From: Ascidiella aspersa
Taxonomy: Eukaryota
Reading direction: 5' to 3'
Length of the DNA: 64,000 nt
Assembly: GCA_963924565.1 (NCBI GenBank)
Contig: OZ004613.1
Location: 22,382,001 to 22,446,000, forward strand
The first letter of the stretch is position 1. The number at the start of each line of letters is the position of its first letter. Under the pieces are notes generated by a model, which saw nothing but the letters and a program-made list of their open reading frames with translations, was not told the DNA's origin and ran no database searches. Shown here one piece after another: positions 8,001 to 64,000 of the stretch. Position numbers and translations under genes: made by a program.

Positions 8001-11000
8001 TATTGCTCAAGAAATAATGGTTGTCGATTGTCAGTGTAGCGAATGCGTAATAAAAAGCAGTATAGAAATTAAAGAATTTTTAACCCTTTATAAAACCATC
8101 ATTGTGATTAAAGCGTTTCGTAATAAGTAAAGTAATGATTCGACGTTAAACTATTAATAGCCTGTATGGTGTAGTGTAGAGGTAGTGTTTCACAAGGGAT
8201 TGCAATCCTAAACACAATTTCGCATTTATTGTGCTTTGCTATTGCATGTATTTACATTTCATTACTGAGTGACGATATAGATTTTTATCTGAATAGCACT
8301 GGTTACATACTTGCAATTCCACGCCAAAGATTATATTTTGCTTCTCTTACTTTACAAACTTTGCAGTTTGGGAAAATAAATACAGATACTATAATTAACG
8401 AAAAATTTTTATTAACGAAAAATTTTACTCCAGCGATGCACACGACGTCATAACAGTGATGGACAGCTATCGGTGGGAAGACCGCTGTTGTTGCGCGCCT
8501 CACGCGGCTCATTCCATCGATTCAAGTCCTATAAAGCATTCGATTGTCAAATGTAATTGCGCCGTGAACGGCTGACGGCGACCAAAACCAATTCTAACGC
8601 AATTATAAGGACAGTCGAAAATCTATACGTCGCCTGTTTATAAAGAATACATTTTAATGGTATCGCCCTCGTGAGACTCCTCTCCGACTGAACAAGGGTG
8701 ATGGGAATTTGTTGCAGTGCATTTTCCAAGCTTTTTGATGGTCTTTGCCGGGCATATTGAGTTTTTCAAGTTGAATTTTGTTTAGATTAAAACAGCAGGT
8801 TTACAGAAAGCGTACATTCTGTAAAGCGACCAACATTCAAAAGCCAGAACATCTATGTTGCACATTGTTGCGCGTTTGGAAAATTTAAACATTTCATCTA
8901 ACACGTTCAGGATTAAGATTAGTTTTATCCTGCTGACTTGCATAACATCCCGCCTACCAGAGCAGTTTTTCGCAACTGTAGACGTTGAAGCAGATTCCAA
9001 ATGCTGCGCCCGAAAAACGAAACAGAAAGAGTCGATTACAAAGCTATTTGACAAAAGTTCCAACTGTATTAGCATTCCAGCACGTGCCACTCTGCGGTTT
9101 GAGCTGTGTCAAGATAAAAGCGAGTCCTCTGTTTGCCCCACCGTATTGTGACGTCATGCGAGGGATTAGTCCAAACTTGTTGGTTGCGAGGCCACGCTTT
9201 AGGGGGCTTACAACGTTTAATCCCCTTGTTCCAGTATCGCAAGTAAACCGTATCCAAAGCCGCCCGAATCACGTTACTATATACACGGCTCGGCACCGTC
9301 TAATCGTTCGCGACGAGGCATAAGGCTACAGGACAAGGGCGGAGCACCCAATACCACACTGCGTCAGTAAACAGTCGAGCAAGATTAAGAATATAAGTAT
9401 GCACACTCCCTTTATTAACGCGCGCCTTTGGTAGCTGTTTAACCACATACGTTGACTGGGTTTTCTCAACGCGTAATAGAGGAATTGTGGTTTTGAAAGC
9501 AAAATTGATCAACTGAAAACACGATTATGAATACAAGCTAGAATGTAGTTTCATGTGTATTCGTTTATTACGAAAACCTGGTCGAACAAAACTCGGAGTA
9601 ATAACGTCCGTTGGTAGGCTGTTTTAATTGTAAGGTTCCACGCGATTAACACGGTTACATTTTCGAAAAATACAAACAAATGCCGCTAAGATACATTTTC
9701 ATCGTTTTAAATTGTCCTCGACTAGTTTTTCCAATAATATTTACGCTATCCAATTTACAGACTTACAGAGTAGCCTACTTAAACCCTGCTTTTAAGAGAT
9801 AAGACGAAACTCGAATCGTTGAAACCTGAGTTACGGAGAACTTAATGTCGTTTGGCTGTGAACTGTCGCGACGCGCAAACATGAGTTTAGTTGTTGCTTT
9901 CACTTTAATTTTTCCTTCCTTGTTTGAGCAATTAATGGTTCATAATATAGGTTTGGATGTATGTTTTTGTCGTTCAGCCCTGAAATGAGTCAGTTTTCAA
10001 AGCAACGTTCACCTCAATAAACGGATTGATTGCATGGCCCAAAAAAAGGAGAATGTAAATCAATGCAGTTACTCTAAGCAGCGACTAAACCTGGGCAGTA
10101 GTAGACGGCAATTTATTTTGCTGTTTGGAGAGAGACTTTGCTACCGCCACATAAGCGTAAACGTAAACTAAACCTAGTCTCGAGAGGTGTAATGTCTGTG
10201 ACGTCATAACTATGTCGCCGACAGTGATTATTAACATTTTCGCGTGTGTAATTCCAGCTATTTGTTTCGTAAACGCTGCGGTGTAAGGCTGTCGAGTAAC
10301 GTGCTTTTAAGTTTGGCTCGATTTCTCGAAAATAGGAGAGAGTTGATCGGCGTTTGACAGAAAGCGTTCAAACTAAAGAAAAGCGTAAATCGATAGACCA
10401 TAGCTAAGATAATTTGTAAGTGCTTGACATCTAAAGAATGAAGTTGGGTAATGCTTCTTCTTATTTTTAAACGAGATTTTATCTGTAAAGGATCTCTGTA
10501 AGTGTGGCTTAACTAAGAGCCTCAAGTAATTAGGGCTTATGACTTTTGACAGACTTAATAATGTCGCAATTAAATAATAAAAAAGTAACTTATCTAAATC
10601 TCCCAAGAAGCTTGACAGAATTGTCATATGTCAATTAATGTCTGGTCTGATTTCGCATTCTAAAACATTCGTATTTAACACTATTATGGTGAAACAGATA
10701 TCTAGGCATGTTTTGGTTGGCACACCGTATGTCCTGGTCGGATCATTATTCCTAACGACGGCTATGGAAATACGCATGGCACGGGCGCAATTCTACGTGT
10801 GTGTTAAAAATCTAAACATAGCCGAACTATAAATGAATATTACTCTTAGAGCGGTCAAGGTAAACATGCCTAATCACAATCACACCATTTTCTTTAAAAT
10901 AGTATTCGCGACAACGACTATAAATACAGGCATCCGTTTTTAGTTTGCCAAAGTTACACTAAAGCAGCGGCCAAGGTATTCGAGCAAATTCGAGAATTGG

Positions 11001-38300: not shown

Positions 38301-41300
38301 CCTCAACGATGGAATATCACCACTACAACCAGTGCATGATGATTCTACAAAGTGAAGGTAAGAACGTTCTGTCTGAATCAATTTTACATTTGGTATTTTA
38401 CCTTGGTTCAAAGTGTTAAAAAAAACAGTGATTAATTGCGGTTTATTGTTTCGTTTTTAAAAAAATTTAGTTTGCTTTACTTTATTTGATTCAAGATATT
38501 GTTTTTCTTTGCTAAATGCACTATTTTTTGTATTTATACATTCGTTTGATGATATTGCCATGTTAACCAAACGCGAAATAAAGAATTCAATTTAATCTAA
38601 AATGAATTGCCTTTATTTAGGTGGGTATATAATAAATAATAAGGTTTGCAACTCAAATACAAATCAATATACTAAAGGCAAATTACTGAAGTACATATTT
38701 TGTTGATTGAAAATTTTTATTTTCATTTTTCTACCTTATCAGGAGAAGGTTTTATTTTCTAAAAAAATTGCCCGTTTCTTTTATTCACTTTTTAAATGGT
38801 AATTTTTTTTTTTAATTACGTATTGACCTATATAAGTAACCTATTAATTGTCGGTTTTATCGCTCGCCGACAAAATATCCTCATTGAAAAAGGCAATAAG
38901 GTTTCATTCATATTCCAAGCACAGAGCACTTTGCTCGTGCTTAAATTCGCGACAAGGACAAACCCGCTTTGCACCATTCGATGGCACACACGCGCAAGAA
39001 TAAAGCAGCTCGTCCGACTGAAAGATGCACTCCCCTCTATTGATGACGTAACTTGGAGCGTGACACGTCACAGATACGTCACGTTTGCCGCTTTGTCGAG
39101 CTTCGATTAGCTGCTGTTTGGGAAAAATGACCGTCGTGGTTGCGCAATCCACGCCGTTTGCTCGCAACACTTTTGTGGAATTGATTAGCGCGAAAAAAGT
39201 GCGCTCGCACACCATCTTGCGGCTAGCGCACGCGGCGGAACAAGATTCGCCCAGATGCGATAGCTGTACCTGCGCCATTAAAAAAATACGTTACGTTCTA
39301 CTAGCCGTTCTGTCTGGAGATATTATCTTTACAATTACGGTTTTGTTCTCATAAAGCGACAAGAACATAAATTGCATTTAAGTGTTTTATTCTTGACAAA
39401 TTACACTTATATGGCAGTCAGTGATGATGTTATTTAATCATGATCTTAGTTGCAAAAAAGTAAATACGTAAAATTCATCCATTCAATTACATTTTAAATA
39501 CATTTTAAGAAAGACATTGTTGTTTTGATCAAAACTATAAGCTAATTATTTAAAATGCTATCTTAAAATGTGCAGCAAGATAGTAGGCTAACGAAGGTTT
39601 GATTACGTTTTTAGATTGTTTATTGTTACGTCGGCTTATAGACTGACCTTCAATGCTGAAACTGGCGGCCATTTTCTTTTTTTCCGTTTCCAGAAGACCT
39701 GACTCGCCAGCGAAACAGACCGCAAACTTTCGGTGCAAAAATCCTGGTTTTCCAAATACGAGTTCAGTCTCTGTAAAAAAACATGTAAATGTTTTTTTGA
39801 GTTACATGTTGTAATTAGAATTACAGACGCATTCACAAATTCACCTCCAAGAATCCTTCGTGCGTAAACTCATAGGTAACGTAAGGGCGGGGCCTTTTGG
39901 AATTGCGTATTTGCTTCAGGGTTTCGTTCACTTGGGTGAGATTGCCAATGTTCACAGTAAACACGAAAGGCGGGCCTTGAAAAAAGGTAGGTTGTTGATT
40001 GCAGTAAAATATTATTTAGGTAATTCAGAAGACCAGGAAGTCCGTTTATAAAACTGGTCTAAACTAAAGAAGTGTTTTAGTATATATTCCATGCCTTTAT
40101 CTTTTACTGTTTAACGAAATGTTTTACATGATGTTTTCACGTTGTCCTTGGTCAGTAAAATTACAACAGGTGTTACTCCCATACAGGAAAGCTTGCTTAA
40201 ATAATGCATAATATAACAATAATTTCGATCTTTCCGCAACTATTCGATGTTAAAACTTTTATCACAACTTAAACAATTCAAAAGCTTTGTCCAAACCCAT
40301 AATAAACCTATGCATTTACGCAACTCACTGCTCACCGATGCTATTTTCTGCGTACGGATTTTGTGACGTCAGTCGGCGATTGGTCGGTTTATCTTTACCG
40401 ACGAAACGCGGGGGGTTGAAACGGGGATTTAGAAACACGGCCCCCTGGGCCAGGGCTTCTAAAGCGGCTGGTCCTTCCACCGGCAACCCCAGGCCAACGT
40501 ACACGGTCGACCGTCTCAGAAGGTCGAGGAACTCGGTTTGATGAAGACGACTATGATTGATGACGAAATCGGGCATATCTGAGTTATCTTCATCCTAAAG
40601 AGGTTTTGTGAAATTATGTTGTAGTGGGACAATATGTGGCACTGTAGTTTGACCTCAGCCGGACATTTTTCTAAGTGGTTTTGGATGATACCGAGCTGCT
40701 AAAATGAACTTAAATGAGGTTGAAATGTAACTTTAAGTATTCGTGGTGTGGCTTGTAATCCTATAGAAAAAAGAAAAGATATAGGTAAGCTAACGCTTTT
40801 TGATTGTATTTCAACCTTTCTTTTTCATCGCCAAGCCAAAGTGTTGATCATAGTTGGTCGCATCTTTCTGAACATTGTTTTAGAATTAGATGAATATCCA
40901 ACAAACCTTGTCGTCTTCCCGAACCGTGGCATGAACTTCGTCAAAGTTTTCGCTTAAGGTCTGAAGAAATCGCAGTTTGTTTCGCCCTTTGAAGATCCGT
41001 TTTCTTTTGCCATAAATCAATGCTATCTTCCTGGAACACACATGTCGGATTGATTACGGAAAGCGGTGTATTGTGAACTTAATGTCTTATTATGCATGCT
41101 AATTTCATGCTTTAAAGGAAACAAAAAACTTGCACCAATAATACAACGTAAAAGCAGGGCCGCTGACAAAAAGTACCAATAGTATAATACGTTGAGTTTT
41201 GACGGTATACACATAATCACGTTTGGTTTATTTACTTAAATACATTTAAAAACACTTGCCTGGTTGTACGTGTTGAGCCTCTTATGTTATTGTTAATGTG

Positions 41301-44300
41301 CTCGCTTTTTATTTTCTTTTTTTAAAGAGGTATTTAACCTACGAAACAACTAAAATCTTGCTGTTACTGATTTTTTTTGCAAAAATATATAGAAGGGCGT
41401 ATCTTTATGCAAAACCATTGGCAGCAGGTTTCTGCTTGTCGATCACTGTTCCGCTGACGCGTAAATAAACAATAAAGCTCAAAGTTTAAAAATCAGAATA
41501 AAATCAGAAAACAGGAATATATATTTCTCCCATACTGGCAAAGGCAGTTCCTTAATTGGAATGATTGATTTTTTAAAAACTGGTTTTTAAACTTTTGAGT
41601 TTTATTGTTTATTGTTTTTTTGCATAATGAGCGCGTGAGTTGAATTAAAAAAAAAGAAACACAGTTCAAATTTCCAACTGTACAATGAGTTGGGATATAC
41701 TTACTTGGTTGAATTTGGGATGTCCGTCGCCATTGCTTTCTCTACAACGAAACCAAGGAACGAGTTGTCCGGAGAATGCGGAAAGTGAGTGAGGAACTGA
41801 CCAGGATCCAATCCTCTACCTACATGCAAATTCCACATGGTCACTATTACATGTCTTGAAAATAGATTACTGCCTACTCGAAATTATTTGAGGCGTGGTG
41901 TGACCCCGAATATGTTACACTTTATAATGCGTGTTCGACACGTTAATTGAACTTTTTATTTCTGTAAAGGTACAATACTTTTTAAATTAATAACCAGGAA
42001 CACGGAGTCGTCGGTTAAAATCCTTCTCCGGCAGAAAAAAATAAACTCGAGTCCGAGTCCCGAGTAAGGAATACGTCTTTGGCCAATTTAATTCCCAAGT
42101 ATCGCTTTGACTTCCTATACCATTTAGGAACTGAAAAAGGGTGGATATACAGCAATCCGAACAGGTCGTCATATAAATTGTCTACCCGCAATTAATATAT
42201 TTGGACAATATTTAACTATTCGCCATTTTATCATTGCAATTTAGAGTTTGCAGTCTTATCAGTGCAATCAATATACTTACATGCATAAAGCGTCCAATAC
42301 TTTTACGAGCGAATATAGAAGCTCCAAGACAATTGGACAAGGTGTGTACTAATATAAGTTAAGGTACCTCCCCATCTGCGGTTGTTCGATCTTTGCGGGC
42401 TGAACAGCGGGTGATTGAACTCCGGCTCGGTTCCATAAACGTCCAAAATACGAATCACACATCGGTAAAGGTACAACGAACCAAGTTGGTCTTGAATCTT
42501 TGTAAAAAAACATCGTTTGTAAATTGATCATCCCCGCCTAAAATTAGGTGCCTTAAAAGGGTTAAACAAAACTATATGTTTAATTTGACGAGAAATTCGC
42601 ACGAAACAGTTACATTTGTATTTACCTGCTGGAGGCCAATAATATCGGTAAAAACAAAATCGTATCGTCTTGCCGATTGACATACGGACGTTTTGTGCTT
42701 TAAAACTTGTTCTAATCGTTCGGGGGACCAAGAAAGGGTGACGTCATGACCCAGGGCGTGCAGGCTTGAAGCCAAGTCGGCCCACTGAACCAGTTCGCCG
42801 AGTGGCCCACCATGAAAAGCAGCCAGGCCAAAGTTAAGCCCAATCTCTTTTGTAAGGAGGCCCATGTGCAGAAGAACACTGAGTTTGACGCGTCTAGTTG
42901 CTGTCGAGCTGTCGTTGTCGCGCGACACACCTTGTCGTTTGTCGCTTGGCTCGTGACGCTTAATCTTGGCAAGCTGAAGGGCGCTGCTGGTCCACTTCTC
43001 TTCCATTCGTTTCACGCGTTTAGAAATCCACTCACAAACCTAAAGGTAGAAGGTTAAGAAGTTGGGTATAACAGTTAATGTACAAAGTATACATGGTTTA
43101 CCTCTCCACATTCGTCAAGTCTGTTCAGCAAATCTTTAAAATCTCTACCGGAGCCTGCTCGAGGAATAATATCAAGAGCGCGGGACTTCGGGAGAAGAGT
43201 TCCGGCGAACACGAAAGCAGCATCACGCGGTTCAGGGCAACTTCTCTCAACGTACACAACATGTCGGTAGATGTAGCAGTCGATATCTAATGCAGTAGGT
43301 TTCAGCTTGATTTGCAAAAGCGAGAGAAATATTTGTGGCAACAAAGCAGGATTTTATCGCTATTGTACTGACAGGAGTTTATGGGCTACACAGAAATCAC
43401 TTTCAGTTGTGAATGACTGAAGATAATCAATAAACTTGAAGCTGTTGACATTTTAGGTTTATCATAGGCAAGACTTTATCTTTTGAATAATAGATATATT
43501 TAGTATATCATTTTACATAGGCAAGGTTTTAATTTTCTATAAAAGGTTTATTCAGTATATAATTTTACATGGACAAGTCTTTCACTTTAGGATAAAATAT
43601 ATATTCAGTATATCATTTTACACGGGCAAGATTTTACTTTTGTATAAACGATATATTCAGTATATTATTTTAGTTGTTAGGTATTAGTTCTACCCAGTGT
43701 GGTGCTGTCGTTGTGAGCGCTTTTCAGTTGCGAAAGGCAAGGGTCCAGTTTCCAATTTTCCAGCAACCAATCATAACGCTTCACGCATCGTCGATCGCCG
43801 TCGATCCGTAACCGTTGTTTTCCGCAAAAGAGCAATCTACCCCGCTGCGTTATTCGTTCCTAGAAATACGTTTTAACTAAAACTAACAGAATAATGCATA
43901 TATTTAACAAACGTATCAAACCAGCAAGACTGCACTAAATTTGGCGGGGGCTTAAAAGTTTCAAGAATATATTACACCAGTCCGTGATTGCGTAGTACGG
44001 GATAGTTTAAATTATTGGTTCCTAAATGCTTCCTTGAAACAATGACGGAACCCTTTAATGCTTAAAACTGCGAAAATTAAAATTCACGCGACTACAATTC
44101 TTCTAACCTTTAGTTCAGTACTAATACTCTATACTTACTGTACACAAGCTACCAAAAGAAGTATTTTGAAAAAAAAAATATTTTTTTAAGAAAAATATTT
44201 CCGCGACTAATATAGTTTTCAACCTATAAGATAAGAGACGTTGTGCGGCCCCTTTAAACAATCTTACGGACCCCAGTTTGACCTCTGGTTTAAATAATAA

Positions 44301-47300
44301 TCAAGCACTGTAAGTTGCCATTTTTATTTAGACAAGTGGCTTTTTAATCCAGTGCGATTTGTTCTGCTCTGCATTAATTCTATAGAGATAACTCGAATTC
44401 TAACAGTCCACCTAAATCTTACCACTGCGACGGCGTCGGTCTGTCTGTGCTCCTTAATCACCTTCTTATGCAGTCTCAGTAGCGCCGCCATCCAGAAGAG
44501 TGCGGTCAGAAGCACAGCAACCCTTACACTTGCAAATGAAACCCGCATTGCACTTTTCCATGGCTATAACAAGCCTTATGACCCCCTACAACACAGAGAG
44601 GGTAACACTGTTAAAAATTGTGCTAACAAATTGACAACCACAGTCTTACTGTTTGCATTTGTACTGTTTGCAAATGGATATATCATCTCGCATGGTGCAA
44701 TGTTTTGCAGATCGCGAGATTCTTCTGTTTAAACTTACAACTTTGTCATTTGATGACCAAGCAACAACAAAAAACAGTACAAATACACAGTAATTTTAAC
44801 AAATGACATTTGCAATAAAATCCCCTAAAACGATGCTTGCACGTGACTAAGGGAAAACGAATATTTGGTCTGTGTCAATACAAACAATACAAACAATACC
44901 AAGCAACAAAAAAATTATCAAAATAATGAGACTATTTTAGCGTGGCGAGAAAATAGCTGACATAGCCTACATAGGATAAAACGAATCTGATATGTGGCAG
45001 GGCGCAGCAGCTAACAGCCCTTAAACTAAAAGGTATACCATGATCCCTATCCATGTTTGGTTGAGAACCACTCTATTATTTAATGGCATACTGTTTTATT
45101 TGTAAACTGATCAAACACCTTTAACAGTAAAAGTGTGGTTTGTCCAGCAACTGAATGAAAAATGTGACCTTTATGATAGATACAACAAACTAAGGTAAAG
45201 CTAGCGAAACTGGGTTAACGCTTTCTAAACTTTTCTTGGTTAACTTGGTAGTACTTCACTGCGGCCTTAACATAAACGCACACAAAATTTTGTGTAATGC
45301 ATCGCATCACAAGTTACACAATGTTCTGAACGGGGCTACCACTGCTCACCATACAATGCAGCCTGAGCCTGAAACTCAAAATCACAACGCCTCGTATGAT
45401 GACAAGCGAACAGCATTCTGCGTCGCAAACGCCTTCCCAATACGTCTGCATCATTTACAAGAAACAAGAATTGCCCGAGGCACATTTGCGCTCAGGTCTG
45501 TTGATTTGTCCTCACATTGCCGAGATGTTGACTAGTCGCCTGAAAGCAGTCAGCGTCCTTGGACTGAATCAAGGCACGTCGGAATTGCGGTTTAGATGGT
45601 AGATAAGGCATAAAGTTCCAACCTGCTTTTCGGCAGGTGCAGTTTGACTTAAAATGTATGTGTCTTGGGCGTTGCCAGATATCGACGGTAGACCAAAAAT
45701 CCTTTGTTAAACGTGTAGGCTAAGTTGTGGTTTAATGCCAATTGGACATGAATGAAAAACAGGGGTAAAAATAAAAAGTAATAAACTGTACACCGGTTGG
45801 TTTCTTTCAAACATCGCACCAAACCGTTAACCAAAGCCGAAATCAAAGGCACTGTTTTAATATCATGCCACATTTTCGTCCGAGGGGTTATGTTGCTAAC
45901 ATAATTTGGGTTAGGGTGCGTCAAGCATTATTATTATATTTGTTCTCCCTATTTATTTGTTGCGTGCAATTTTAATTTTGACGACTCGTTTCGTTACTGT
46001 TCAAAAAGTGGTATGATTCGAAACCAGCCCTCAAACAACTTCCTGGCTTGGTTTAAAATTGTAAAAAAAATTGTTTTTTAAGGGTGTGAGATCTTGTCCC
46101 ACCTGAGCTCGAGCGATTACGCGCGAGTTATCAAGCTCATTCAGCACGCCATCATCAGCACCGACCTGGCGGTCTACTTCAAGAACAGGAACAACTTTTT
46201 CGACGTTGTCAAGTCGGCCAAACCGGATTGGCAAACCAACGACCAGCACCGCGATCTTTTGAGGTAGGAGGGCACGACAAGCTCCTATTTTGATCTCGTT
46301 AAAGCGACTTGGTCTTATGTTGCAACTTATGTCGCGCGCATTATATAAATATATATACATATATTTGACACCAGGGTAAAATGCGTAAGTAATGCGGACC
46401 TCTGTATGCGATTTTAGGCTGTTTACAAAAACCTTACGGTCAGCGTACATTGTCATTTTGCAACAGCCACTGTTTAAGCACTTCTTTCTAATGTTTTTTG
46501 GGCAAATTAGAAATTCTCGCCCCGGTTGAGCAAATCTGTTACACAACGAAAGATTGATTCGAAAAAAAACACGATTAAGTGTATTTTTAAAACCACAAAC
46601 ATATGTTTAAAAAACAATCTTTACCTTATATTATTACATTCTGGGGTGTCCTAATACCACCTTCCCCTGGTCGGAAGGTAGTTTTTTCAAACTATTGTTT
46701 GGTTTTTAAAAGTTTTAATGAACAAAATATATTTTTTTACATTAGTGATTAGTTATTTTCCGACGTTGGCTCACGTATGTTGCGTTTCTGCTAAAAAAAA
46801 ACCTTCTTCATATTAAAAAGAAATAAAATCCACCAGAGTTAAAACATTATTGGAACACGATGTTGAACTAAGTATGTCTGGCATTTTAGATGGACAAATA
46901 GAATAGCTTGTTTAAACGCTTTTACACATATTACAAATGTTGTCATACACTTTGATTTATTCATTTCTAAGAATAAAATTAAAATATGTCATTTTCTGTC
47001 AACTTTCGACACAAAACTTCGCCAAATGGAAATTTCACCACCTGCTTTGCATACTGGCCTATCTACTAACCGCTAAAGTCATTTGCATATACCAATAACA
47101 ATACATGGGTGCACTATGCACGGATTTGTAATGTAGCTTGATAATGAAATGCAAAGCCATGAAGGTCGAGTAGATTGACATAATCTTGATTGAGACATTT
47201 CCATACGAGTTTTGTCATCTTCAGTTAATGTGACTAAGAAGCAAAACAAGAATCATTTATAAAGGTGGGACGAAATTGTTATCAGTCTGCGTTTCTATAG

Positions 47301-50300
47301 TTGGATCATTATTTCTATTTTTTCTTTTATAAGTGATGCTTGTGTTGCTTCTCAGTCACATTAGCTAAATATAATACAAGTTCATATCGAAACGTCTTAA
47401 TCAAGATGATGTCGATCTATTCGACCTTTTTGGCTTTTCAATTCATTACCAATAGCCATACATCTGTCTGAAAATCTAAACACTGTGTTTTGCGGCACCA
47501 GGAGCGTTGTTATAACCGGGTGTGATATCGCCGGCATCACAAGGCCTTGGAACGTTCAGAAAAAGGTAGCTCTCTCTATCTCTCTCACCTGTCTGTTTTG
47601 TGTTTCATTCAAGCAGAGTGATGCTGTATATTGTGCCGCGACTTTGCACTTTAGAGCGCCCTATAATTTTTTCCTCGTGCCCGCACGCACGCATTGTCAC
47701 ACGCATTCGTGTTTTTGCACCCTCTACCCCCTCGTCGAAGCACACGGCACGCGTCGGCATGTGTATCGTCTCTATATAGTTTGCTAAAATACGAACCAGG
47801 ACCCTGAGAAGTCTATGAGAATGCTAGCTCTGAAATAATACCAGAAAATTCAGGATTGTTCTTTTAGTTGAAAACATAAATGCGATTTGGTTTATGAAAA
47901 TTTAGTAACTGTAGATAGTAAATTTTTCAACTTTGTTTAATACGGTTATATACATTTTTTTTGAACCGATTTCTAAATTTGTTTAACCCAGTATGCTTTC
48001 GTATTCTTTATACCACCGCCAAATTTGTGGATAGTTTTTCGCTTGAAATGTAATTTTGTTTGGGTATAAACTTAAAGTGAGGTCTTATCATGTCGCGTTC
48101 TCATAACGATAGTGTTCGTATGCGTTTTCTCCTATTTTTGGATGAGTTTAGGCGTTCTTTGCCAAAGGAGCGAACACACGTAGGAAACAAATCGCCGGTC
48201 ATCCCATCGCGTCATGCGTGTTGCGATTCAGTTTTCACCACTGTTCAACTACCTCGCTTCATCCTTATGCTTATTATCATTGCGATATAATAAGCTGTAA
48301 GCGGTTGGCTTTGAAAAAATCTCATACGCCGCATACTTGCGTTACCTGCTACATACGCATAGCAGCAACATGGCAGTAGCCATAAAAGTAATGCCTATAA
48401 TTTCTCATCATCATCATCGTAAAGTTACCAATTGTTTTCGCTCGTAAATCTGCGTTTGACGTGCAATCATATTGCCAGATTAAATATCGAATTAGACTTT
48501 TTTTGTATTCCATTGTAAAAGTCCTTTCGAAACTGAACTGTGGCCCTTATTGGAAAAAGGTAAGAAAACGAACCGTCGTCACATATATGCCTAAAGGAGT
48601 TGCTATACAGTTTTTTCATGAGTTTGACCACTCTTCCACAATAAATTACGGTGTATATTGTTAATAACTAACCTACCAGAAGTAAAGTTGATAATTTTTT
48701 AATCTGTGGTGGCTGTAACTTGGCTGGGTGAGCTTTTGCAATACCGTCAGGCCCTAAAACGGATTTGTGGCATTATTAGGCACCAATTAGACTCAATATC
48801 GACCCATTTTGATATTTTTGTCAAAATTCTACTTACCAACCTGTCATAATTTTCAATGTGCAAAATTGTACACTTTTAACGCTTGAAAATAGCAAAAGGC
48901 ACAGTAACTGAGATTGTTTTAATGTATTGCAGTATATTGGTCACATTTGTTTTAATACTCGGCAAACATGGAAAACTTATTTTGTTTTTTTCATTTGATA
49001 TTTTTTTGACAATAAATAAATATAAATTAATTTTACCTTACCTGCTTTGAGACAAAAATCAAACTGTTTTACACTTTTACTGCAACATCAGGCATTTAAA
49101 TTAGGTACAGCCAAAAGTGCCAGCCACGCTTATAAAGGCTATTTTATTTGTCAGACTGAAACATAAAATTGCTGTATTTTCAAATACATGATTTAAAAAA
49201 AAAATGAAATCCAATATATTTTAATTAAGGTAACAATAGCTCTATGTGAGATAAAACTGACTTATTAATCTGTTTCGTAAACAGTTATGCGATATATAAG
49301 CAACTTTTTTTGGTTGTAATATAAGTAAAATATATATATTTTGGCCAAACCATACTTGCGTCGGTTTCGCATGGTTAAACAGCTTCGTTATTATAAGATA
49401 CTTGTCCAACGCAGGGGCATGGTTATGACGGCCACTGATGTGTCAGCCATTACAAAGCCGTGGCTCATCGAACTAAAGGTACCTATTAAACTCGTTTTGT
49501 TATTGATCTATACCGCCGCGAAAATAGAATACGGTCATCGCTCGTGAATTCGTCCACAATTCTATTAAAAATGGTTACTAGAGATGTCCAAAGTTACGAG
49601 AGATGTCCAATCCCTCCTGTTTTGAATCGGAAACCACCACCTGGTGTTTTTTTTTGCGAAAGGTCAACCGTCCGATCGGATACCAAATGACGTCGATACT
49701 GTACTAAAATAGGCAAACTTCAACTTGCAAAGGTTTAAAATTGGTTTGGTGTGAGAAATTTCAATTATTTTAATAGAAATCATACGACTGATACCCCATT
49801 ACTATCACAATATGACATCAGACTTTAAACATCTCTGGTTTTTACCAACTCTACCACCCTTAACGTTTCACAGCGATCACCGTATTCTAATAACTGCGAG
49901 AATATAACATTACTTATTTTGCCGTTTTCTGTTGTTAGTATATAGTCTCGATCGGCAGTAATTTCCGTTCGTAGGCAAAGATTTTTATTTTTTGACCAAC
50001 CTATCGATTCGTATAGAATGGAATATTCCATTGTGCTAACGACAAATCTTTTCTAGATTACTTTGTGAAAGCGCAATATATTGTGAAACTACAAACAAAT
50101 TTTAAAACGCGTATATTAGAAATCCAACTGATAAAATATTTAAGTTTAAATGTAACCATGGAGAGTGGCGGACAGTAGGGTATTTGCCAAAAGGTAATTT
50201 GATTAATCATAATACACTTTAGAGTAAGCACGGTTGGTTACGAGTCATGCTTATACAACAAGAAAAAAAAGAATACGAATTGCCATTTTGCAACGACGTG

Positions 50301-52732
50301 GCACAATATTTTGGACATTGTTCACTGTTAGTTTAGTACAACATACCACCTACACCAGTGGTTCCCAACCTTAGCACCCCCCAGAAACAATAAATAGATT
50401 ATTCCAACCCTATCAAAATTTTCGTAATTCACTACAATGTCACAAAAATCGGAACTGGAACAACACACATCAATTCTACAAAACATGTAGGGAAGTATAA
50501 CTTAGCTTATGGTACTCTAATCTCACACAGAGAGTTGTAAGAGGACTACCAATTGAAAAAATCATGTTCTGAAATATTACTAAATATCTATCGGCACCCC
50601 TAAGGATAAGAAATGGAACCCCGATTGGGAACCACTGGCCCACACCTTCACCAAATATTTTCTTGCTACTTTTCGAACAACCGATCGTGGAGTGTTTTTT
50701 TACTGTACTGATATTTGCAGTCCAGCGCTGATCTCACTGTCCGTCACTCTTTAGGGGGTAGAGGGTTGTGATCATGGCAGTTAGTAGTATGCAGCACATT
50801 TTCTTGTTGATACCTGCATGAAACCGCTCGCAATCATAATACATACCGCTATAGCTTCGATGCGTGTGCGCGCGTGTGTGTGTGTGTGTGCCTGTGCATG
50901 CGCCTGTATATGTGCATTGTGCGTTTGATGCATGCAGGGTACTGCAAGTAGAGTAGAATAAAGTATTAACAAGTGCATTTACCGAACTAAAAAATACAAT
51001 CACGCTGGGTAATTTGCTCACAAGAAAACCTGAGAATAAATCCAACCAGGACAAGCCGATTTGGTGTATTAATAAGAGACGAAACTATTTAGTCAGTAAA
51101 TTTATAAACTCGTATAGCTTTCTAATTAGCTGACGTAAATACGAACATTAACCAAAGGGTATACGGTTAAGCTTTGAGTTAAACTATTGGATAATCTGAA
51201 GCCATTAGAATGCTTCGTTGCGTTTGGTATTAAAACGGGGTGCGTTCAGCACGCTTAAGCAAGAGCCCGATCGCGAATGTGCCGCTTCGCCAGGTCGCCG
51301 AACAGGTTGCTGAGGAGTTTTTCGAGCAAGGCGACATCGAGAAGAATCGACTGCGTCAGGAGCCGATCGACATGATGAACAGAAAGCTGAAACACAAGCT
51401 GCCCAACATGCAAGTCGGCTTCATCGACAGCATCTGCCTGCCGTTGTACAAGGTGGGAACAGGGACGGACCATGTTTTTTAGAGTACCTATAAGCACTTA
51501 GGACTCTGGTGCCCTATATGTGTCATTCAAAATATATTCACGATAAACCACACAATATTATTCATTGAAAATATACAGAGGTTTAAGATGATACTTGAGA
51601 ACGAAAAATAAGCACAAATTTATTTCAATCGGTTCAATATTGAGGTTTGAGTTGTCTGACCAACTCGAATTATTTCATTAAACACTGAGGCAACATTGGC
51701 AATTGAGCTATCGAAAATTCTGTAGTGCCCCCCATCTCTCTGTGCCCTAAACTCGTGCTTATTTTTCTTAATGGTTAAATCCACCCTGGCTGAGGTTAAT
51801 AATTCGACACGGCCGTATTCCAACGCTATTTGTCTAAAAAAATCCGTTTCGGCAGGAGAATAGTTTTGAGTTTCTTGGAAGTCTGATGCAGTATGTCGCA
51901 TGTTTTCTAGTCACCAACCAATAGCCTTCAGAAACAGTTTTCGTTATTAGCACATATCCCAAAATTTAGTGCAATTCCAAAAGTGATGTAACTACCATCT
52001 ATGTGCCGCCATAAATAAGGACGAATGAATAAAACAACGATTTTAATACGATACATATTGTGGTAAATTCAAACAAAGAAGCATATATTGGTAACTTTCC
52101 TTCCGTTGATCAACATTCTATCCTATTGTACAACTGCAGGCCGTATAGTCTTATAAAACAGTGGTCGGCAATCGCCGGTCCACGGACCGGTACCGGTCCG
52201 CGAGGAGTTCATTACCGGTCCGTAGCAGGGTTCCAGATGACATTTTGATCAAAACCCGATTTTTTTATTGTAAAATCGAACTCCTCGTACGTAGAATATA
52301 TCGAAAACGGGAAATATATAGCGTTTTTTTTATGTTCAAGCGTGCTCATATAAAGTGCAATAGAATTAAATCATGCAAACAATGTTTATAAACAATGTTG
52401 ATGTTCAGACAGAAAATTTTCGAAAAAACGGATGCATTTTAATTTGGACATTGAAAAAAGTTGTTATAAATTTCCTTTACAGAACATTTGTTTTTTTCAA
52501 GGCCGGTCCGCGACAAAATTTCAGTTTTAAACCGGTCCGCAGTGCAAAAAAGGTTGCCGACCCCTGTTATAAAACACTCTCACAAGGTTAAAACCAAAGA
52601 ATAGCTAAAAACACGTATTTTTCGTTACAGGCTCTTGTAGCGACTTCTACTGGCCTGCAGCCCATGCTAGCCGGTTGCCTGGACAATCGCAAAAACTGGG
52701 TGAAACTGGCCGAATCCGGAACCAGTCTGTAA
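11317..52732 (+). CDS. PDE5/PDE11: GAF-domain cyclic nucleotide phosphodiesterase, PDE5/PDE11 group (whole gene, 20 coding exons per isoform, ~881 aa, two mutually exclusive versions of exon 18)
   Basis: Hand-spliced join: 11317-11353, 12384-12536, 13119-13525, 20353-20454, 22368-22487, 22668-22757, 24698-24850, 26696-26837, 27989-28128, 31314-31361, 33335-33410, 33908-34074, 34676-34726, 35829-35975, 36763-36980, 38269-38357, 46083-46263, [47502-47565 or 49415-49478], 51294-51452, 52631-52732. All introns are GT-AG and phase-consistent, 2646 nt with no internal stop. Two GAF NK..F..DE motifs; catalytic motifs [21 protein letters not shown]....T(R/K)PW, EFFEQGD, MQVGFID. Confidence 0.93.
12384..12536 (+). 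CDS. PDE exon 2 ([27 protein letters not shown]...)
   Basis: tttctgtag acceptor, gtatgt donor; resembles PDE5A [27 protein letters not shown]. Confidence 0.88.
13119..13525 (+). CDS. PDE exon 3 (TPIRKIS kinase-site region, start of GAF-A)
   Basis: Branch-like ctaac, cgcttag acceptor, GC-rich codons; TPIRKIS...LKPMV resembles PDE5A TPTRKIS...LRPIV; gtaggc donor. Confidence 0.9.
20353..20454 (+). CDS. PDE exon 4, GAF-A ([16 protein letters not shown]...[10 protein letters not shown])
   Basis: ttttcag / gtaaat; ADR.SLFLV GAF motif. Confidence 0.93.
20525..20923. mobile_element. hAT-type MITE
   Basis: Perfect 15-bp TIR CAGTGCTTTCCAACC; perfect 8-bp TSD ACCTAAAT. Confidence 0.92.
22368..22487 (+). 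CDS. PDE exon 5, GAF-A ([21 protein letters not shown])
   Basis: tttcag / gtaagt; GAF GIAG..A.TG..LNI.DAY motif. Confidence 0.93.
22668..22757 (+). CDS. PDE exon 6, GAF-A ([26 protein letters not shown])
   Basis: tttgcag / gtaaga; RFN..ID..TGYKT..ILCMPI motif. Confidence 0.93.
24698..24850 (+). CDS. PDE exon 7, GAF-A NKFDE region
   Basis: tttcag / gtatat; [20 protein letters not shown]. Confidence 0.93.
26696..26837 (+). CDS. PDE exon 8 ([13 protein letters not shown]..., start of GAF-B)
   Basis: ttgcag / gtaagt; VLLDLA..LFEEQ. Confidence 0.92.
27650..27935. mobile_element. hAT-type MITE
   Basis: TIRs CAGTAGTTCCCAAACT / AGTTTGGGAATCACTG; flanks acctatatag / acctatag. Confidence 0.8.
27989..28128 (+). 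CDS. PDE exon 9, GAF-B
   Basis: tcgcag / gtaagc; phase 1 to 0; ...[14 protein letters not shown]. Confidence 0.85.
28384..28832. mobile_element. hAT-type MITE
   Basis: Perfect 16-bp TIR CAGTGGTTCCCAAACT; perfect TSD CCCTAAGG. Confidence 0.93.
31314..31361 (+). CDS. PDE exon 10, GAF-B ([16 protein letters not shown])
   Basis: ttcttgcag / gtgagt; N..DA..D.RF GAF motif. Confidence 0.85.
32150..32935 (-). repeat. Dispersed repeat, inverted homolog of 60730-61530
   Basis: Reverse-complement blocks shared, e.g. catcactaact.ccctaa, taaccccaaacag, taatactatggt, tagatttttctg. Confidence 0.75.
32397..32602. mobile_element. hAT-type MITE nested in an older repeat
   Basis: CAGGTGGTTCTTAA / TTAAGAACCACTG; TSD TTTTAACC / TTCTAACC. 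Confidence 0.8.
33335..33410 (+). CDS. PDE exon 11, GAF-B (SLLCVPIRD)
   Basis: tttgcag / gtagct. Confidence 0.9.
33574..33617 (-). ncRNA. Minimal type I hammerhead ribozyme-like motif
   Basis: UUUACA-CUGAUGA-U-GGCA(loop)UGCU-GAAAC-GUC-UGUAAA: perfect 6-bp stem I, 4-bp stem II, palindromic ACGU stem III. Confidence 0.6.
33733..33776 (+). ncRNA. Minimal type I hammerhead ribozyme-like motif (stem I mismatch)
   Basis: UUUAGA-CUGAUGA-U-GGCA...UGCU-GAAACGUC-UGUAAA. Confidence 0.5.
33908..34074 (+). CDS. PDE exon 12, GAF-B NKFDE region
   Basis: ttttag / gtaagt; GVIQLVNK...[20 protein letters not shown]. Confidence 0.93.
34676..34726 (+). CDS. PDE exon 13 (VLSYHA...)
   Basis: ttacag / gtaagt; LE-VLSYHA motif. 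Confidence 0.9.
35175..35345 (+). mobile_element. Possible degenerate tRNA-derived SINE
   Basis: A-box-like AGCTCAGTCGTT (35185) and B-box-like GAATTCAAATC (35228), A-rich tail; no cloverleaf. Confidence 0.3.
35610..35792. mobile_element. Degenerate hAT-type MITE
   Basis: CAG...CTG termini; TSD AGTTAGAG / TGTTAGAG. Confidence 0.65.
35829..35975 (+). CDS. PDE exon 14, start of catalytic domain
   Basis: atacag / gtgagg; ...[15 protein letters not shown]. Confidence 0.9.
36413..36733. mobile_element. hAT-type MITE (related to 50356-50637 and a fragment at ~12740-12890)
   Basis: CAGTGTTTCTCA start; TSD ATGTAAAA / ATGTAAAG; shared internal blocks such as ttgtaagag and aaatatct..ggcaccc. Confidence 0.72.
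36763..36980 (+). CDS. PDE exon 15, metal-binding core
   Basis: ttacag / gtaagt; [14 protein letters not shown] and [10 protein letters not shown] class I PDE signature. Confidence 0.96.
38269..38357 (+). CDS. PDE exon 16 ([22 protein letters not shown])
   Basis: atctag / gtaaga; HPLA.LY...ME.HH motif. Confidence 0.93.
38904..39269 (-). CDS. MGAT5: MGAT5 terminal exon 11 (Cys-rich C-terminal domain)
   Basis: GESCSAAC...RVCPCREF...ALC, stop; minus-strand AATAAA near 38780. Confidence 0.92.
   Translation of the reverse strand, partial: VQLSHLGESCSAACASRKMVCERTFFALINSTKVLRANGVDCATTTVIFPKQQLIEARQSGKRDVSVTCHAPSYVINRGECIFQSDELLYSCACVPSNGAKRVCPCREFKHEQSALCLEYE
38904..44548 (-). CDS. MGAT5: Alpha-1,6-mannosylglycoprotein 6-beta-N-acetylglucosaminyltransferase (GnT-V, GT18), 11 coding exons, ~712 aa, nested in PDE intron 16
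   Basis: Join on the minus strand: 44548-44423, 43859-43694, 43286-43102, 43039-42626, 42497-42368, 41819-41705, 41030-40907, 40594-40336, 39975-39845, 39770-39648, 39269-38904; 2139 nt, GT-AG, phase-consistent. N-terminal type II signal anchor; motifs [76 protein letters not shown] versus B paralog not resolved. Confidence 0.93.
39648..39770 (-). CDS. MGAT5: MGAT5 exon 10
   Basis: [12 protein letters not shown]...WPPVSAL. Confidence 0.9.
39845..39975 (-). CDS. MGAT5: MGAT5 exon 9
   Basis: GPPFVFTV...[14 protein letters not shown]. Confidence 0.9.
40336..40594 (-). CDS. MGAT5: MGAT5 exon 8
   Basis: [30 protein letters not shown]. Confidence 0.93.
40907..41030 (-). CDS. MGAT5: MGAT5 exon 7
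   Basis: ALIYGK...EVHATV. Confidence 0.9.
41705..41819 (-). CDS. MGAT5: MGAT5 exon 6
   Basis: [20 protein letters not shown]. Confidence 0.93.
42368..42497 (-). CDS. MGAT5: MGAT5 exon 5
   Basis: [17 protein letters not shown]. Confidence 0.92.
42626..43039 (-). CDS. MGAT5: MGAT5 exon 4
   Basis: [13 protein letters not shown]...FTDIIGL. Confidence 0.93.
43102..43286 (-). CDS. MGAT5: MGAT5 exon 3
   Basis: [15 protein letters not shown]; phase 1 to 0. Confidence 0.85.
43464..43672. repeat. Tandem repeat, ~52-53 bp x4, in an MGAT5 intron
   Basis: Units like ataggcaag...tattcagtatatcattttac. Confidence 0.85.
43694..43859 (-). CDS. MGAT5: MGAT5 exon 2
   Basis: tttctag acceptor; [17 protein letters not shown]. 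Confidence 0.85.
44423..44548 (-). CDS. MGAT5: MGAT5 exon 1 (signal anchor)
   Basis: [24 protein letters not shown]; gtaag donor, phase 0. Confidence 0.75.
46083..46263 (+). CDS. PDE exon 17 ([11 protein letters not shown]...HRDLLR)
   Basis: ttttaag / gtagga; missed by the ORF track on + but carries the TDLA motif; ends phase 2. Confidence 0.93.
47106..47452. mobile_element. Diverged foldback element with hammerhead-like cores
   Basis: 47138-47262 is an imperfect reverse complement of 47327-47452; internally deleted relative at 58541-58695. Confidence 0.8.
47502..47565 (+). CDS. PDE exon 18A, mutually exclusive ([21 protein letters not shown])
   Basis: caccag / gtagct; 64 nt, phase 2 to 0; invariant metal-ligand Asp and T.PW motif. 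Confidence 0.88.
47719..47732 (+). promoter_or_regulatory. Candidate intronic selector element downstream of exon 18A
   Basis: ACCCTCTACCCCCT is the exact reverse complement of 50753-50766. Confidence 0.6.
49415..49478 (+). CDS. PDE exon 18B, mutually exclusive ([21 protein letters not shown])
   Basis: acgcag / gtacct; 64 nt, phase 2 to 0; gapless homolog of 18A. Confidence 0.9.
50356..50637. mobile_element. hAT-type MITE
   Basis: TIR CAGTGGTTCCCAA / TTGGGAACCACTG; TSD ACCTACAC / GCCCACAC. Confidence 0.85.
50751..50768 (+). promoter_or_regulatory. Candidate intronic docking site upstream of exon 19
   Basis: TTAGGGGGTAGAGGGTTG pairs with 47719-47732 (14 bp perfect) and imperfectly with 49846-49863. 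Confidence 0.55.
51294..51452 (+). CDS. PDE exon 19 (EFFEQGD...[15 protein letters not shown])
   Basis: cgccag / gtggga; invariant Gln and Phe of the purine pocket. Confidence 0.95.
52159..52566. mobile_element. hAT-type MITE
   Basis: TIR CAGTGGTCGGCAA / TTGCCGACCCCTG; perfect TSD TTATAAAA; subterminal ccggtcc repeats. Confidence 0.9.
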
Positions 52733-54666
52733 CATCTATTAACTTTAAATAACATCAAATCGAAAGCGCCCATTAGTCTTCAAAATTTTTTGTGTAACGT
52801 TCCTCTTCTTGATGCATTTCCGCGTGTTTCGTATCGTTCGCCTTTCACCGTTATATCTTGTTCGCTTTTTTTACCCCACCTGTTTTCAGCGGTATACCAC
52901 CGAGGAACGGGTGGTGGAAAGGTCATCGGTCAAAAGCGTAATAGAAATTGCCGCCCGTAATTGCATAGACGGTGTGTCGTGTGTTACAGTTTGTTGCGAA
53001 AAAAGAAAGAAGGGGTTCGAGGCCTCTGGCATCTACCAGAGGTTGGCATCAAAGTAACAATAGGAGCAACTAGAAAGGGAAGCATAGACGGATCGAAGCC
53101 ATTTGCTCAAAAAAATAAAATGCAAATAGAAAATACCAGTTTATCTAGTAGATATACGGTACAAATTAATTAGAAAAAAATGGTCTTAAGTTAAGTGTGA
53201 ATTTGGAAGAAAAGTTGTGTGAGGTTATTGTAATGTTAACAATCCTACTAATCCGCAAAAGTAGAGTTCTAATTTGCAATTATCAAGCATAAAATTTACT
53301 TGATTTTTGAAATGAATAGATCATTAGAATAAACAGCCTGCGAAAAAGTGACAAATTTATTTTTAAGATCTTGGTATCCCCGGAACTGCTTACATATCTA
53401 TAGCGATCTTTTCAATCGTCCAGCTTTAGTTATTTCAAAAATTTCACCTTCCTTTAAATTTCCTTTATTTTGGTAAATATGATATTGGAAAGAGTAATTT
53501 CAGTAGTGTATATATTCTTACACGAGTAATGCCATGCTTGTTTGGTTTAGAACAGGGTTTGGCAACCTACGGCCCGCCACATATTTGACAAGAGGTCATT
53601 CTTCATAATTTTTGGTTGTTACAACTACCTAAAAGCAAGCTCCTGCATCGAGTGTAACAAGTAGTTAGAGCCTTTTCAATCACAAATACCCTAATTTTAT
53701 CTCTGAAAATCAGTCGTTGCGGTTGTTATAATAAGACGCGTAAAGTCTACACAGTTAACATGTAATTATACTTGCAGACTGCGAATCCTCATTACTCAGC
53801 ATCAAACGTTTGTAGTTTTGCTTCATGTGTTAAATTGGGGTTTAACGCATTGGTGTCCGAAACAGCGTTTTGATAAAGAAATTACTGCTGTACCGTCGTA
53901 CCGGTAAATATATTCACTTGTTTCTGGGCCATGTCCCAACAAAATAATTTTTTGCCTATGTAAAATGTCGTTCTTGGGCTGAATATACAGTTCCTTTAGT
54001 TTAAACGGACAAAAACGTAGTAAACAAGGACAGAAGTTAAATTTTGCATTTACATAGTGAATGTCGACCGAAAATATAGTCTGCGGGGCATGGCCCGATG
54101 CTCTCTGGATCCGATCATGGGCTCGAAAACACCATTGCAAATACAAACAAGAAGCTTATATTGTTTACTGAAGTTGAACAGCGACTTCCAACGTAACCTA
54201 TTTGCTTTGTGGTAGCTTACGTAACCACAACCTGAAAACCCATACGCTGATGAAATGTGCATAATTATGATTAAATTTTCAACAACGACAGAAAAGTGTT
54301 TACTTTGGAGTCGCCGATAGATTACGCTACCTAGTTGCTGTAAGAACTGTATTGACATAACTTACGGGTCATGTTTCAAAGGTCACTTCTCCCCAGGTAG
54401 CCAATGCTGTGCTGTCGTTGCCTATTTGAACGCAAATGTAAAATGAACTTTCAGAGCATACTGCTTTTGGCGAATAGCTTTAAAATTAGAGCGATTTTAG
54501 TTGGAATTTGCCCTACAGTTAAGTTTACCCTGTAATATAAACACGACAAGACGTTTAATTCCGAAACAACAGCAGCGTGAAGCTGTGCGTTTGCAAAGGT
54601 AAACGTGGTTGAACTGGAAACGGCTCGCCTTACACAGCCACGCAAAGATTGTTTCGCAGTCAAACC
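52522..54666 (+). repeat. Segmental duplication, copy 1
   Basis: Aligns with 61860-64000 (offset 9338 at its start) with scattered substitutions and small indels. Confidence 0.95.
52631..52732 (+). CDS. PDE terminal exon 20 ([33 protein letters not shown])
   Basis: ttacag acceptor; PML.GC..NR..W motif; TAA; no CaaX box. Confidence 0.92.
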   Translation, partial: ALVATSTGLQPMLAGCLDNRKNWVKLAESGTSL

Positions 54667-61859: not shown

Positions 61860-64000
61860 CAGTTTTAAACCGGTCCGCAGTGCAAAAAAGGTTGCCGACC
61901 CCTGTTATAAAACACTCTCACAAGGTTAAAACCAAAGAATAGCTAAAAATACGTATTTTTCGTTACAGGCTCTTGTAGCGACTTCTACTGGCCTGCAGCC
62001 CATGCTAGCCGGTTGCCTGGACAATCGCAAAAACTGGGTGAAACTGGCCGAATCCGGAACCAGTCTGTAACATCTATTAACTTTAAATAACATCAAATCG
62101 CAAGCGCCCATTAGTCTTCAAAATTTTTTGTGCAACGTTCCTCTTCTTGATGCATTTCCGCGTGTTTCGTATCGTTCGCCTTTCACCGTTATATCTTGTT
62201 CGCTTTTTTTACCCCACCTGTTTTCAGCGGTATTCCACCGAGGAACGGGTGGTGGAAAGGTCATCGGTCAAAAGCGTAATAGAAATTGCCGCCCGTAATT
62301 GCATAGACGGTGTGTCGTGTGTTACAGTTTGTTGCGAACAAAGAAAGAAGGGGCTTGAGGGCTGTTGCATCTACCCGAGGTTGGCATCAAAGTAACAACA
62401 GGAGCAACTAGAAAGGGAAGCATAGACGGATCGAAGCCATTTGCTCAAAAAAATAAAATGCAAATAGAAAATACCAGTTTATCTAGTAGATATACGGTAC
62501 AAATTAATTAGAAAAAAATGGTCTTAAGTTAAGTGTGAATTTGGAAGAAAAGTTGTGTGAGGTTATTGTAATGTTAACAATCCTACTAATCCGTAAAAAG
62601 TAGAGTTCTAATTTGCAATTATCAAGCATAAAATTTACATGATTTTTGAAATGAATAGATCATTAGAATAAACAGCCTGCGAAAAAGTGACAAATTTATT
62701 TTTAAGTCCTTTGGTATCCCCGGAACTGCTTACATATCTATAGCGTTCTTTTCAATCGTCCAGCTTTAGTTATTTCAAAAATTTCACCTTCCTTTAAATT
62801 TCCTTTATTTTGGTAAATATGATATTGGAAAGAGTAATTTCAGTAGTGTATATATTCTTACACGACTAATGCCATGCTTCTTTGGTTTAGAACATGGTTT
62901 GGCAACCTACGGCCCGCCACATATTTGACAAGAGGTCATTCTTCATAATTTTTGGTTGTTACAACTACCTAAAAGCAAGCTCCTGCATCGAGTGTAACAA
63001 GTATAAGTTCGAGCCTTTTCAATCGCAAATACCCTAATTTTATCTCTGAAAATCAGTCGTTGTGGTTGTTATAATAAGATGCGTAAAGTCTACACAGTTA
63101 ACATGTAATTATACTTGCAGACTGCGAATCCTCATTTTCCAGCATCAAACGTTTGTAGTTTTGCTTCATGTGTTAAATTGGGGTTTAACGCAGTGGCGTC
63201 CGAAACAGCGTTTCGATAAAGAAATTACTGCTGTAACGTCGTACCGGTAAATATATTCACTTGTTTCTGGGCCATGTCCCAACAAAATAATTTTTTGCCT
63301 ATGTAAAATGTCGTTCTTGGGCTGAATATACAGTTCCTTTAGTTTAAACGGACAAAAACGTAGTAAACAAGGACAGAAGTTAAATTTTGCAAAGGTTGGC
63401 CGAAAATATAGTCTGCGGGGCATGGCTTGATGCCCTCTGGATCCGATCCTGGGCTCGAAAACACCATTGCAAATACAAACAAGAAGCTTATTTTGTTTAC
63501 TGAAGTTGAACAGCGACTTCCAACGTAACCTATTTGCTTTGTGGTAGCTTACGTAACCACAACCTGAAAACCCACACGCTGATGAAATGTGCATAATTAT
63601 GATTAAATTTTCAACAACGGCAGAAAAGTGTTTAATTTGAAGTCGCCGATAGATTGCGCTACCTAGTTGCTGTAAGAACTGTATTGACATAACTTACGGG
63701 TCATGTTTCAAAGGTCACTTCTCCCCAGGTAGCCAATGCTGTGCTGTCGTTGCCCATTGAAACGCAAATGTAAAATGAACTTTCAGAGCATACTGCTTTT
63801 GGCGAATAGCTTTAAAATTAGAGCGATTTTAGTTGGAATTTGCCCTACAGTTAAGTTTACCCTGTAATATAAACACGACAAGACGTTTAATTCCGAAACA
63901 ACAGCAGCGTGAAGTTGTGCGTATGCGAAGGTAAACGTGGTTGAACTTTAAACGGCTCGCCTTACACAGCCACGCACAGTTTTTCTCGCAGGGTCAAACC
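61860..64000 (+). repeat. Segmental duplication, copy 2 (runs off window end)
   Basis: Begins cagttttaaaccggtccgc as at 52522 and continues to the last base. Confidence 0.95.
61969..62070 (+). other. Duplicate of PDE terminal exon 20 (orphan or alternative last exon)
   Basis: 102 nt identical to 52631-52732 with intact ttacag acceptor and stop. Confidence 0.9.

Follow-up and report, generated by a model that had tools for sequence, protein, structure and literature searches.

A candidate long-range RNA stem beside two mutually exclusive exons of an ascidian cGMP phosphodiesterase gene

Introduction

In human ATE1, the ultra-long-range stem R2-R5 promotes the upstream exon 7a over exon 7b and thereby acts on the ratio of the two exons, not on their exclusivity (PMC7797038). 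In the insect genes 14-3-3zeta, Mhc, and MRP1, each variable exon has its own selector, and the selectors compete for a single conserved docking site (PMC6071210). Exclusivity can also be enforced by a frame shift followed by nonsense-mediated decay, as for the IIIb and IIIc exons of FGFR2 (reference 76 of PMC7797038). The locus compared with these systems here lies in a 64,000-nucleotide stretch of contig OZ004613.1 of Ascidiella aspersa, referred to below as the window, the plus strand of which carries a GAF-domain cGMP phosphodiesterase (PDE) gene of the PDE5/6/11 type. Two alternative exons of this gene, 18A and 18B, stand in tandem between exons 17 and 19, and the element in question is a perfect 14-bp complementarity between the intron that follows 18A (intron A) and the intron that follows 18B (intron B).

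An earlier note on this DNA had proposed that the 14-bp pairing, two further helices, and a weaker second selector together form a docking-site/selector system that enforces the choice between the two exons, and it had taken insect genes as its precedent; the closest proteins to the window PDE are ascidian, and the locus is accordingly treated as an ascidian one. The reading preferred here, to which we assign a probability of roughly 0.43, is narrower. It holds that one long-range stem, restricted to this species or to those closely related to it, would loop out 18B and so tilt the choice to 18A.

Results

The sequences and coordinates quoted in the earlier note were all found to be exact. The C-rich 14-mer lies 154 nt past 18A, and its G-rich partner lies 1275 nt past 18B and 528 nt ahead of exon 19 (Table 1); these 14 bp are the longest exact complement between the introns flanking 18B. 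Pairing was assessed by helix and window scans, as whole-intron RNAduplex yields a meaningless end-to-end duplex. The Watson-Crick helix has an energy of -29.1 kcal/mol, whereas the second-strongest helix that these introns can form stands at -19.2. When the 3819-nt stretch from 18A to exon 19 is folded to minimum energy, the 14-bp helix is present together with helix 2 and a shifted form of helix 3 (both described below). In a reduced construct made up of 335 nt of intron A and all of intron B, the pairing probability of the 14-bp helix is ~1.0. The placement argued for in the earlier note, that of a strong and unique long-range helix positioned to loop out 18B and to draw the 18A donor and exon 19 together, is borne out by these results.

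By length alone the 14-mer is unremarkable, because exact reverse complements of at least 14 nt arose in 3.1% of 2000 dinucleotide shuffles and in 13% of 114 real pairs of the same geometry (190 kb of genome), most of the latter being A+T-rich or transposon repeats. The earlier note had called for a comparison of the intron pairing with shuffled introns, and none of 400 dinucleotide shuffles reached the helix energy of -29.1. Shuffles of the G+C-rich arms themselves gave a helix like the 14-mer in 2 of 3000 cases. A census of perfect helices was also taken in the real genome at spacings of 0.5-4 kb, covering 7.6e8 cells or 226x the search space. It returned eight helices at -29.1 or stronger, of which five come from one long inverted repeat, two are termini of miniature inverted-repeat transposable elements (MITEs), and the last is the 14-bp helix itself; the next orphan perfect helix in the census stands at -25.6. 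The estimate of "1 in 100" for a chance 14-mer made in the earlier note holds as a naive count, but by helix energy the 14-mer is rarer than that estimate allowed. A stable complementary pair that flanks the exon to be looped out and exceeds chance, as expected of a bias stem of the ATE1 R2-R5 type, is thus present at this locus.

The 14-mer has 4 copies in the 308.6-Mb genome, compared with 3 for a reversed control, and each of the two arms is a single-copy sequence. An origin of the pair as transposon terminal inverted repeats was considered and rejected, the arms being single-copy and the complementarity of their flanks only 10%. A decayed inverted duplication was likewise rejected, because arm A aligns with the reverse complement of arm B only at the 14-mer.

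The PDE gene was traced by tblastn of relatives' proteins as ~19 exon matches spanning 12380 to ~52730, and individual exons match Pfam PDEase_I; the exons were searched singly, not as one joined spliced protein. Exons 18A and 18B are tandem and encode the same protein segment, which falls between positions 148 and 173 of the PDEase_I profile. Both retain the Asp of the T-x-x-D motif, a metal ligand in PDE structures, and differ in the residues next to it. As their shared length is not divisible by three, a transcript that takes up both exons or skips both loses the reading frame, and the exclusivity of 18A and 18B therefore needs no RNA structure. Transcripts with both exons or neither are presumably removed by nonsense-mediated decay.

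Over all exons the window PDE is 72% identical to that of Phallusia and 65% to that of Ciona, and both exon types are present across the proteins of Ciona, Phallusia, Clavelina, and Styela. In Ciona savignyi they occur as separate annotated isoforms, H2YVD4 (P0001) of the 18A type and H2YVD3 (P0152) of the 18B type. The C. intestinalis protein (P0153) is of the 18A type, that of Clavelina is of the B type, and that of Styela is A-like, whereas the Phallusia mammillata protein (P0155) is of the B type and matches window 18B at 21 of the 21 residues after the shared Arg. Because both types occur in the proteins of other ascidians, the 18A/18B pair is old within this group.

A metagenome scan with exon 19 added a second locus, represented by the JGI contigs L001-L003, which are 99.5-99.7% alike and carry the orthologous PDE locus of a tunicate. 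The layout of L001 is that of the window, with exon 17 ending at 2064, 18A at 3260-3323, 18B at 5666-5729, and exon 19 starting at 9697 (locus 1895-9855). Exons 18A and 18B are again in tandem there, and both are 64 nt long. The two exons of equal length in the window, the C. savignyi isoforms, and L001 together fit a cluster of homologous, tandemly arranged exons that are mutually exclusive. Loci from outside the tunicates in that scan (e.g. L007, L008, and L012) carry only one exon 18, and within this sample the duplication of exon 18 therefore looks tunicate-specific.

A number of observations weigh against a role for the stem. The window and L001 align only at the exons and ~10 nt of their flanks, and neither 14-mer was found within three mismatches at the analogous place in L001. 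The best helix between introns A and B of L001 reaches -25.1 with nine G-U pairs, a value attained by 15 of 150 shuffles, and the longest exact complement there is 13 nt. A search of L001 for an analogous element gave a diffuse best window pair and a weak motif past 18A without a partner. Since L001 is without the motifs, the exon pair is kept in ascidians without the 14-bp helix. The earlier note had expected its elements to be conserved in species that keep both exons, and this expectation failed in L001, the sole such species compared and a distant one; neither conservation nor covariation of docking or selector elements was found there. To these comparative results are added points of other kinds. 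With G-U pairs allowed, 3 of the 114 real same-geometry pairs (~2.6%) reach the energy of the helix, two of these three being repeat-derived, and three intron pairs had been open to choice in the earlier note. The arms are transcribed ~3 kb apart, and next to the 3' arm lies a local 18-bp inverted repeat, a possible competitor of the stem. In the species' one RNA run, of which ~6% was read, depth is about zero on exons 17-19, neither 18A nor 18B carries a read, and 0 junction reads were seen.

The ATE1 authors point out that conservation of competing structures does not usually extend over long distances (PMC7797038). Contigs of the closely related sample X4 span both arms, and the differences listed for them include none in either 14-mer, an agreement that says nothing either way because the divergence is only ~1%. 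When the open frame 47485-47784, which runs from 18A through the 5' arm, was used to look for intron translations of relatives among proteins, no candidates came up, a result that says little. Known RNA families in the stretch amounted to two sub-threshold hits of microRNA models, both on repeats.

Much of this evidence serves the best-placed alternative, namely that the 14-mer and its neighbouring tracts are a coincidence without a role, that trans-acting factors choose the exon, and that the frame rule with nonsense-mediated decay excludes the other. L001 keeps both exons with neither a conserved element nor an analogous helix, real genomic pairs match the 14-mer in length and, with G-U pairing, in energy at the frequencies given above, the flanking helices can be explained by composition and selector B by background (see below), and the finding was picked after the fact out of a very large scan. 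A coincidence of this kind is a real possibility, if a somewhat doubtful one, as a comparable orphan G+C-rich perfect helix occurred 0 times in 225 further equivalents of the search space and in none of the 400 shuffles, and as the 14-mer sits in the topology that a working stem would have, beside rare complementary tracts.

These tracts are a CA/CG-alternating patch around the 5' arm and a GT/GC-rich tract downstream of the 3' arm (Table 1), and they hold the two helices that the earlier note had nested outside the 14-bp pairing. In helix 2, CACACGCAT at 47698-47706 is complementary to 50860-50868; in helix 3, GCACGCACGCA at 47683-47693 pairs with 50881-50891 by way of two G-U pairs. The optimal duplex between the two arms has an energy of -74.6, leaves the 14-bp helix unused, and is matched by 96 of 500 dinucleotide-shuffled pairs of arms (-70.0 +/- 5.4), and helices of -19.2 or better appear in 6% of arm shuffles. 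In the reduced construct, helix 2 pairs with a probability of ~0.1, and helix 3, in the register given in the earlier note, with one of ~0. Because shuffled arms match the duplex energy, the nested helices are not specific, and composition accounts for what had been put forward as two further elements. The GT/GC-rich tract itself pairs promiscuously with many CA/CG-rich sites. A comparison of strands (-74.6 for plus versus -70.2 for minus) gave no clear signal.

The tracts are rare: (GT)5 or longer turns up a single time in 248 kb of other sequence, and the flank geometry reaches -19.2 at only 0.08% of random real positions. Three alternating purine-pyrimidine tracts, a kind rare in the genome, occur in three consecutive introns, at 46333-46368 with (CG)n/(TA)n, at 47682-47757 with CA/CG-rich sequence, and at 50857-50935 with (GT)n/GC. 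CA-rich tracts are candidate sites for hnRNP L-like proteins, and (UG)n tracts for TDP-43/CELF-like proteins. It is therefore conceivable that the two tracts act as putative splicing-regulator sites through bound protein and that the 14-mer is incidental; both are rare simple sequences near regulated splice sites, and their mutual pairing has no preferred register. Such an account is nevertheless improbable, since it offers no explanation for the perfect 14-nt complementarity that lies beyond the simple repeats, and neither the CA/CG nor the GT/GC tract was found in the introns of L001.

Selector B, the weaker site after 18B that the earlier note had cast as a competitor for the docking site, did not rise above background. 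When partners of the docking element were ranked by energy, selector A came out at -31.6 kcal/mol and selector B (49838-49863) at -20.2, in fourth place, behind two sites inside a MITE-like element. A set of mutually excluding pairings, with a selector beside each variable exon and every selector complementary to one docking site, is thus not what this locus contains, and because helices 2 and 3 and selector B are all at background, it holds one credible helix and not a competing set. A search for the upstream-docking architecture, with intron 17 paired against intron A or B, gave nothing stronger than -19.8. Full competition as in insect 14-3-3zeta and Mhc, in which selector A or B would contact 50753-50766 and so enforce one exon, can draw on an architecture like that of the genes with downstream docking sites in PMC6071210, on the CTCTACC..CCC that selector B has in common with selector A and its 11 bp plus bulge with the docking site, and on a weak similarity, CTC(T)ACCxCC...AGCACACGG, just past 18A in both the window and L001 (reached by 20 of 300 shuffles), but it is very improbable given the rank of selector B, an L001 motif that has no partner in L001 intron B, the failure to find conserved intronic blocks between the window and L001, and an exclusivity already supplied by the reading frame.

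The coordinates of the exons, arms, and tracts are collected in Table 1.

Table 1. Exons, candidate pairing elements, and tracts of the PDE locus, in positions of the window.
Feature	Positions	Strand	Remarks
Exon 17	46083-46263 (start approximate)	+	PDEase_I profile 92-148; phase-2 end, ..TTG AG/gt
Exon 18A	47502-47565 (64 nt)	+	Peptide is (R) + 21 residues
C-rich CA/CG-alternating patch	47682-47757	+	Surrounds the 14-mer; 5' sides of helices 2 and 3; unique in genome
Helix 5' arm, "selector A" ACCCTCTACCCCCT	47719-47732	+	Exact reverse complement of 50753-50766
Exon 18B	49415-49478 (64 nt)	+	Peptide is (R) + 21 residues
"Selector B" CAACTCTACCACCCTTAA	49846-49863	+	Indistinguishable from background
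18-bp inverted repeat, left arm	50159-50176	+	-29.3 kcal/mol, G-U pairs included
18-bp inverted repeat, right arm	50736-50753	+	1-nt overlap with docking 14-mer
Helix 3' arm, "docking site" AGGGGGTAGAGGGT	50753-50766	+	Perfect partner of 47719-47732
GT/GC-rich simple-sequence tract incl. (GT)8	50857-50935	+	3' sides of helices 2 and 3
Exon 19	51294-51452	+	PDEase_I profile 173-222

The arms of the 18-bp inverted repeat in intron B differ by three A/G differences, which become G-U pairs in RNA, and they enclose the MITE-like element; the repeat may represent either an older transposon boundary or a stem that competes locally. The element itself (50355-50638) has perfect 14-nt termini, CCAGTGGTTCCCAA and TTGGGAACCACTGG, and a high-copy interior (50416-50599), and further copies of its terminal motif, GGTTCCCAA(A/C)C, lie at 28382/28817, 20524/20909, and 60013/60403 as well as at other loci of the genome. 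Just upstream of the right arm of the inverted repeat and the docking 14-mer is a hypervariable patch 66 nt long (50655-50720), where samples X2 and X4 have in common five substitutions and an insertion. Ahead of 18A, a very high-copy repeat (47104-47471) ends ~30 nt before the acceptor; its contig word-depth is ~10^3-10^4x that of its flanks, joints of the "opposite strands" kind are numerous in it, and a weak hairpin-type Rfam match lies at 47231-47357.

Elsewhere in the window, a gene nested in a PDE intron on the minus strand (38904-43015) has three open frames that match Pfam Glyco_transf_18 (MGAT5-like) at profile positions 72-194, 317-403, and 470-557. Downstream of the PDE gene, a plus-strand open frame at 55545-55829 matches Pfam Sulfotransfer_4 (E = 1.6e-23). 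Two near-identical segments, 52588-54358 and 61926-63690, lie ~9.3 kb apart, and each contains a match to the C-terminal PDE exon (52628-52729 and 61966-62067) with 54% identity to Phallusia residues 837-873. They may have arisen by duplication of the last exon or as a segmental duplication.

Discussion

In the mechanism we favour, the C-rich 14-mer past 18A would pair in the pre-mRNA with the G-rich 14-mer ahead of exon 19 and so close a loop of ~3 kb that holds 18B. The splice sites of 18B would be sequestered and the 18A donor would come to lie near the exon 19 acceptor, favouring the join 17-18A-19. Where the stem stayed unformed, whether through fast elongation, helicases, or proteins bound to its arms, 18B would be free for use. 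The CA/CG-rich and GU-rich flanking tracts may contribute register-independent stickiness or protein binding, not specific helices. The stem would on this account set the ratio of 18A to 18B, and exclusivity would come from the 64-nt frame rule. The analysis establishes the sequences, the strength and uniqueness of the 14-bp pairing, its place in the predicted fold, and the age of the exon pair; we infer that the stem forms in vivo and that it affects exon choice.

The probability given to this single-stem reading starts from a prior of a few percent that a given mutually exclusive pair is regulated by structure and sets it against a chance of ~0.5-3% for an orphan helix of such strength in this topology; the neighbouring complementary tracts and the comparative result, negative but weak, were also counted. 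A bolder version appears unlikely. According to it, RNA pairing switches the metal-binding helix of the PDE between ancient exons by means of the 14-bp stem and CA/GU "zipper" tracts free of register, as the first such case in tunicates, maybe as half of a competing system whose second selector has gone unrecognised.

If the stem works, control of mutually exclusive exons by RNA structure, so far proven in arthropods and a few mammalian genes, would reach the tunicates and would be tied to the catalytic pocket of an enzyme. If it fails, the locus would be a warning that a perfect G+C-rich 14-mer in the "right" topology can lack function. The locus is small and easily tested, as arms of 14 nt and a 3-kb loop suit electroporation of ascidian embryos. 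A more general lesson is that, for "nested helices" driven by composition, shuffling the arms themselves is a necessary control.

Compared with the insect genes 14-3-3zeta, Mhc, and MRP1 (PMC6071210), the PDE locus has the same disposition, with a docking candidate after the last variable exon, a selector candidate after a variable exon, and a loop-out of the exon between them. It differs from the set of selectors competing for a conserved site found there in having one credible selector, no conservation, and a tunicate host. With FGFR2 it shares an exon length that is not a multiple of three; a mechanism of that type explains the exclusivity of the PDE exons, with decay presumed, but not which of the two is chosen. 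Human ATE1 has a competing module, R1/R4 versus R3, where the PDE locus has one helix, and its stem spans 30 kb where that of the PDE gene spans 3 kb. The ATE1 elements are conserved in mammals and proven by compensatory mutations and antisense oligonucleotides, whereas the PDE helix is unconserved and predicted from sequence. What ATE1 and the PDE locus have in common is a pair of mutually exclusive exons in a chordate gene and the topology of a single long-range stem placed to favour the upstream exon.

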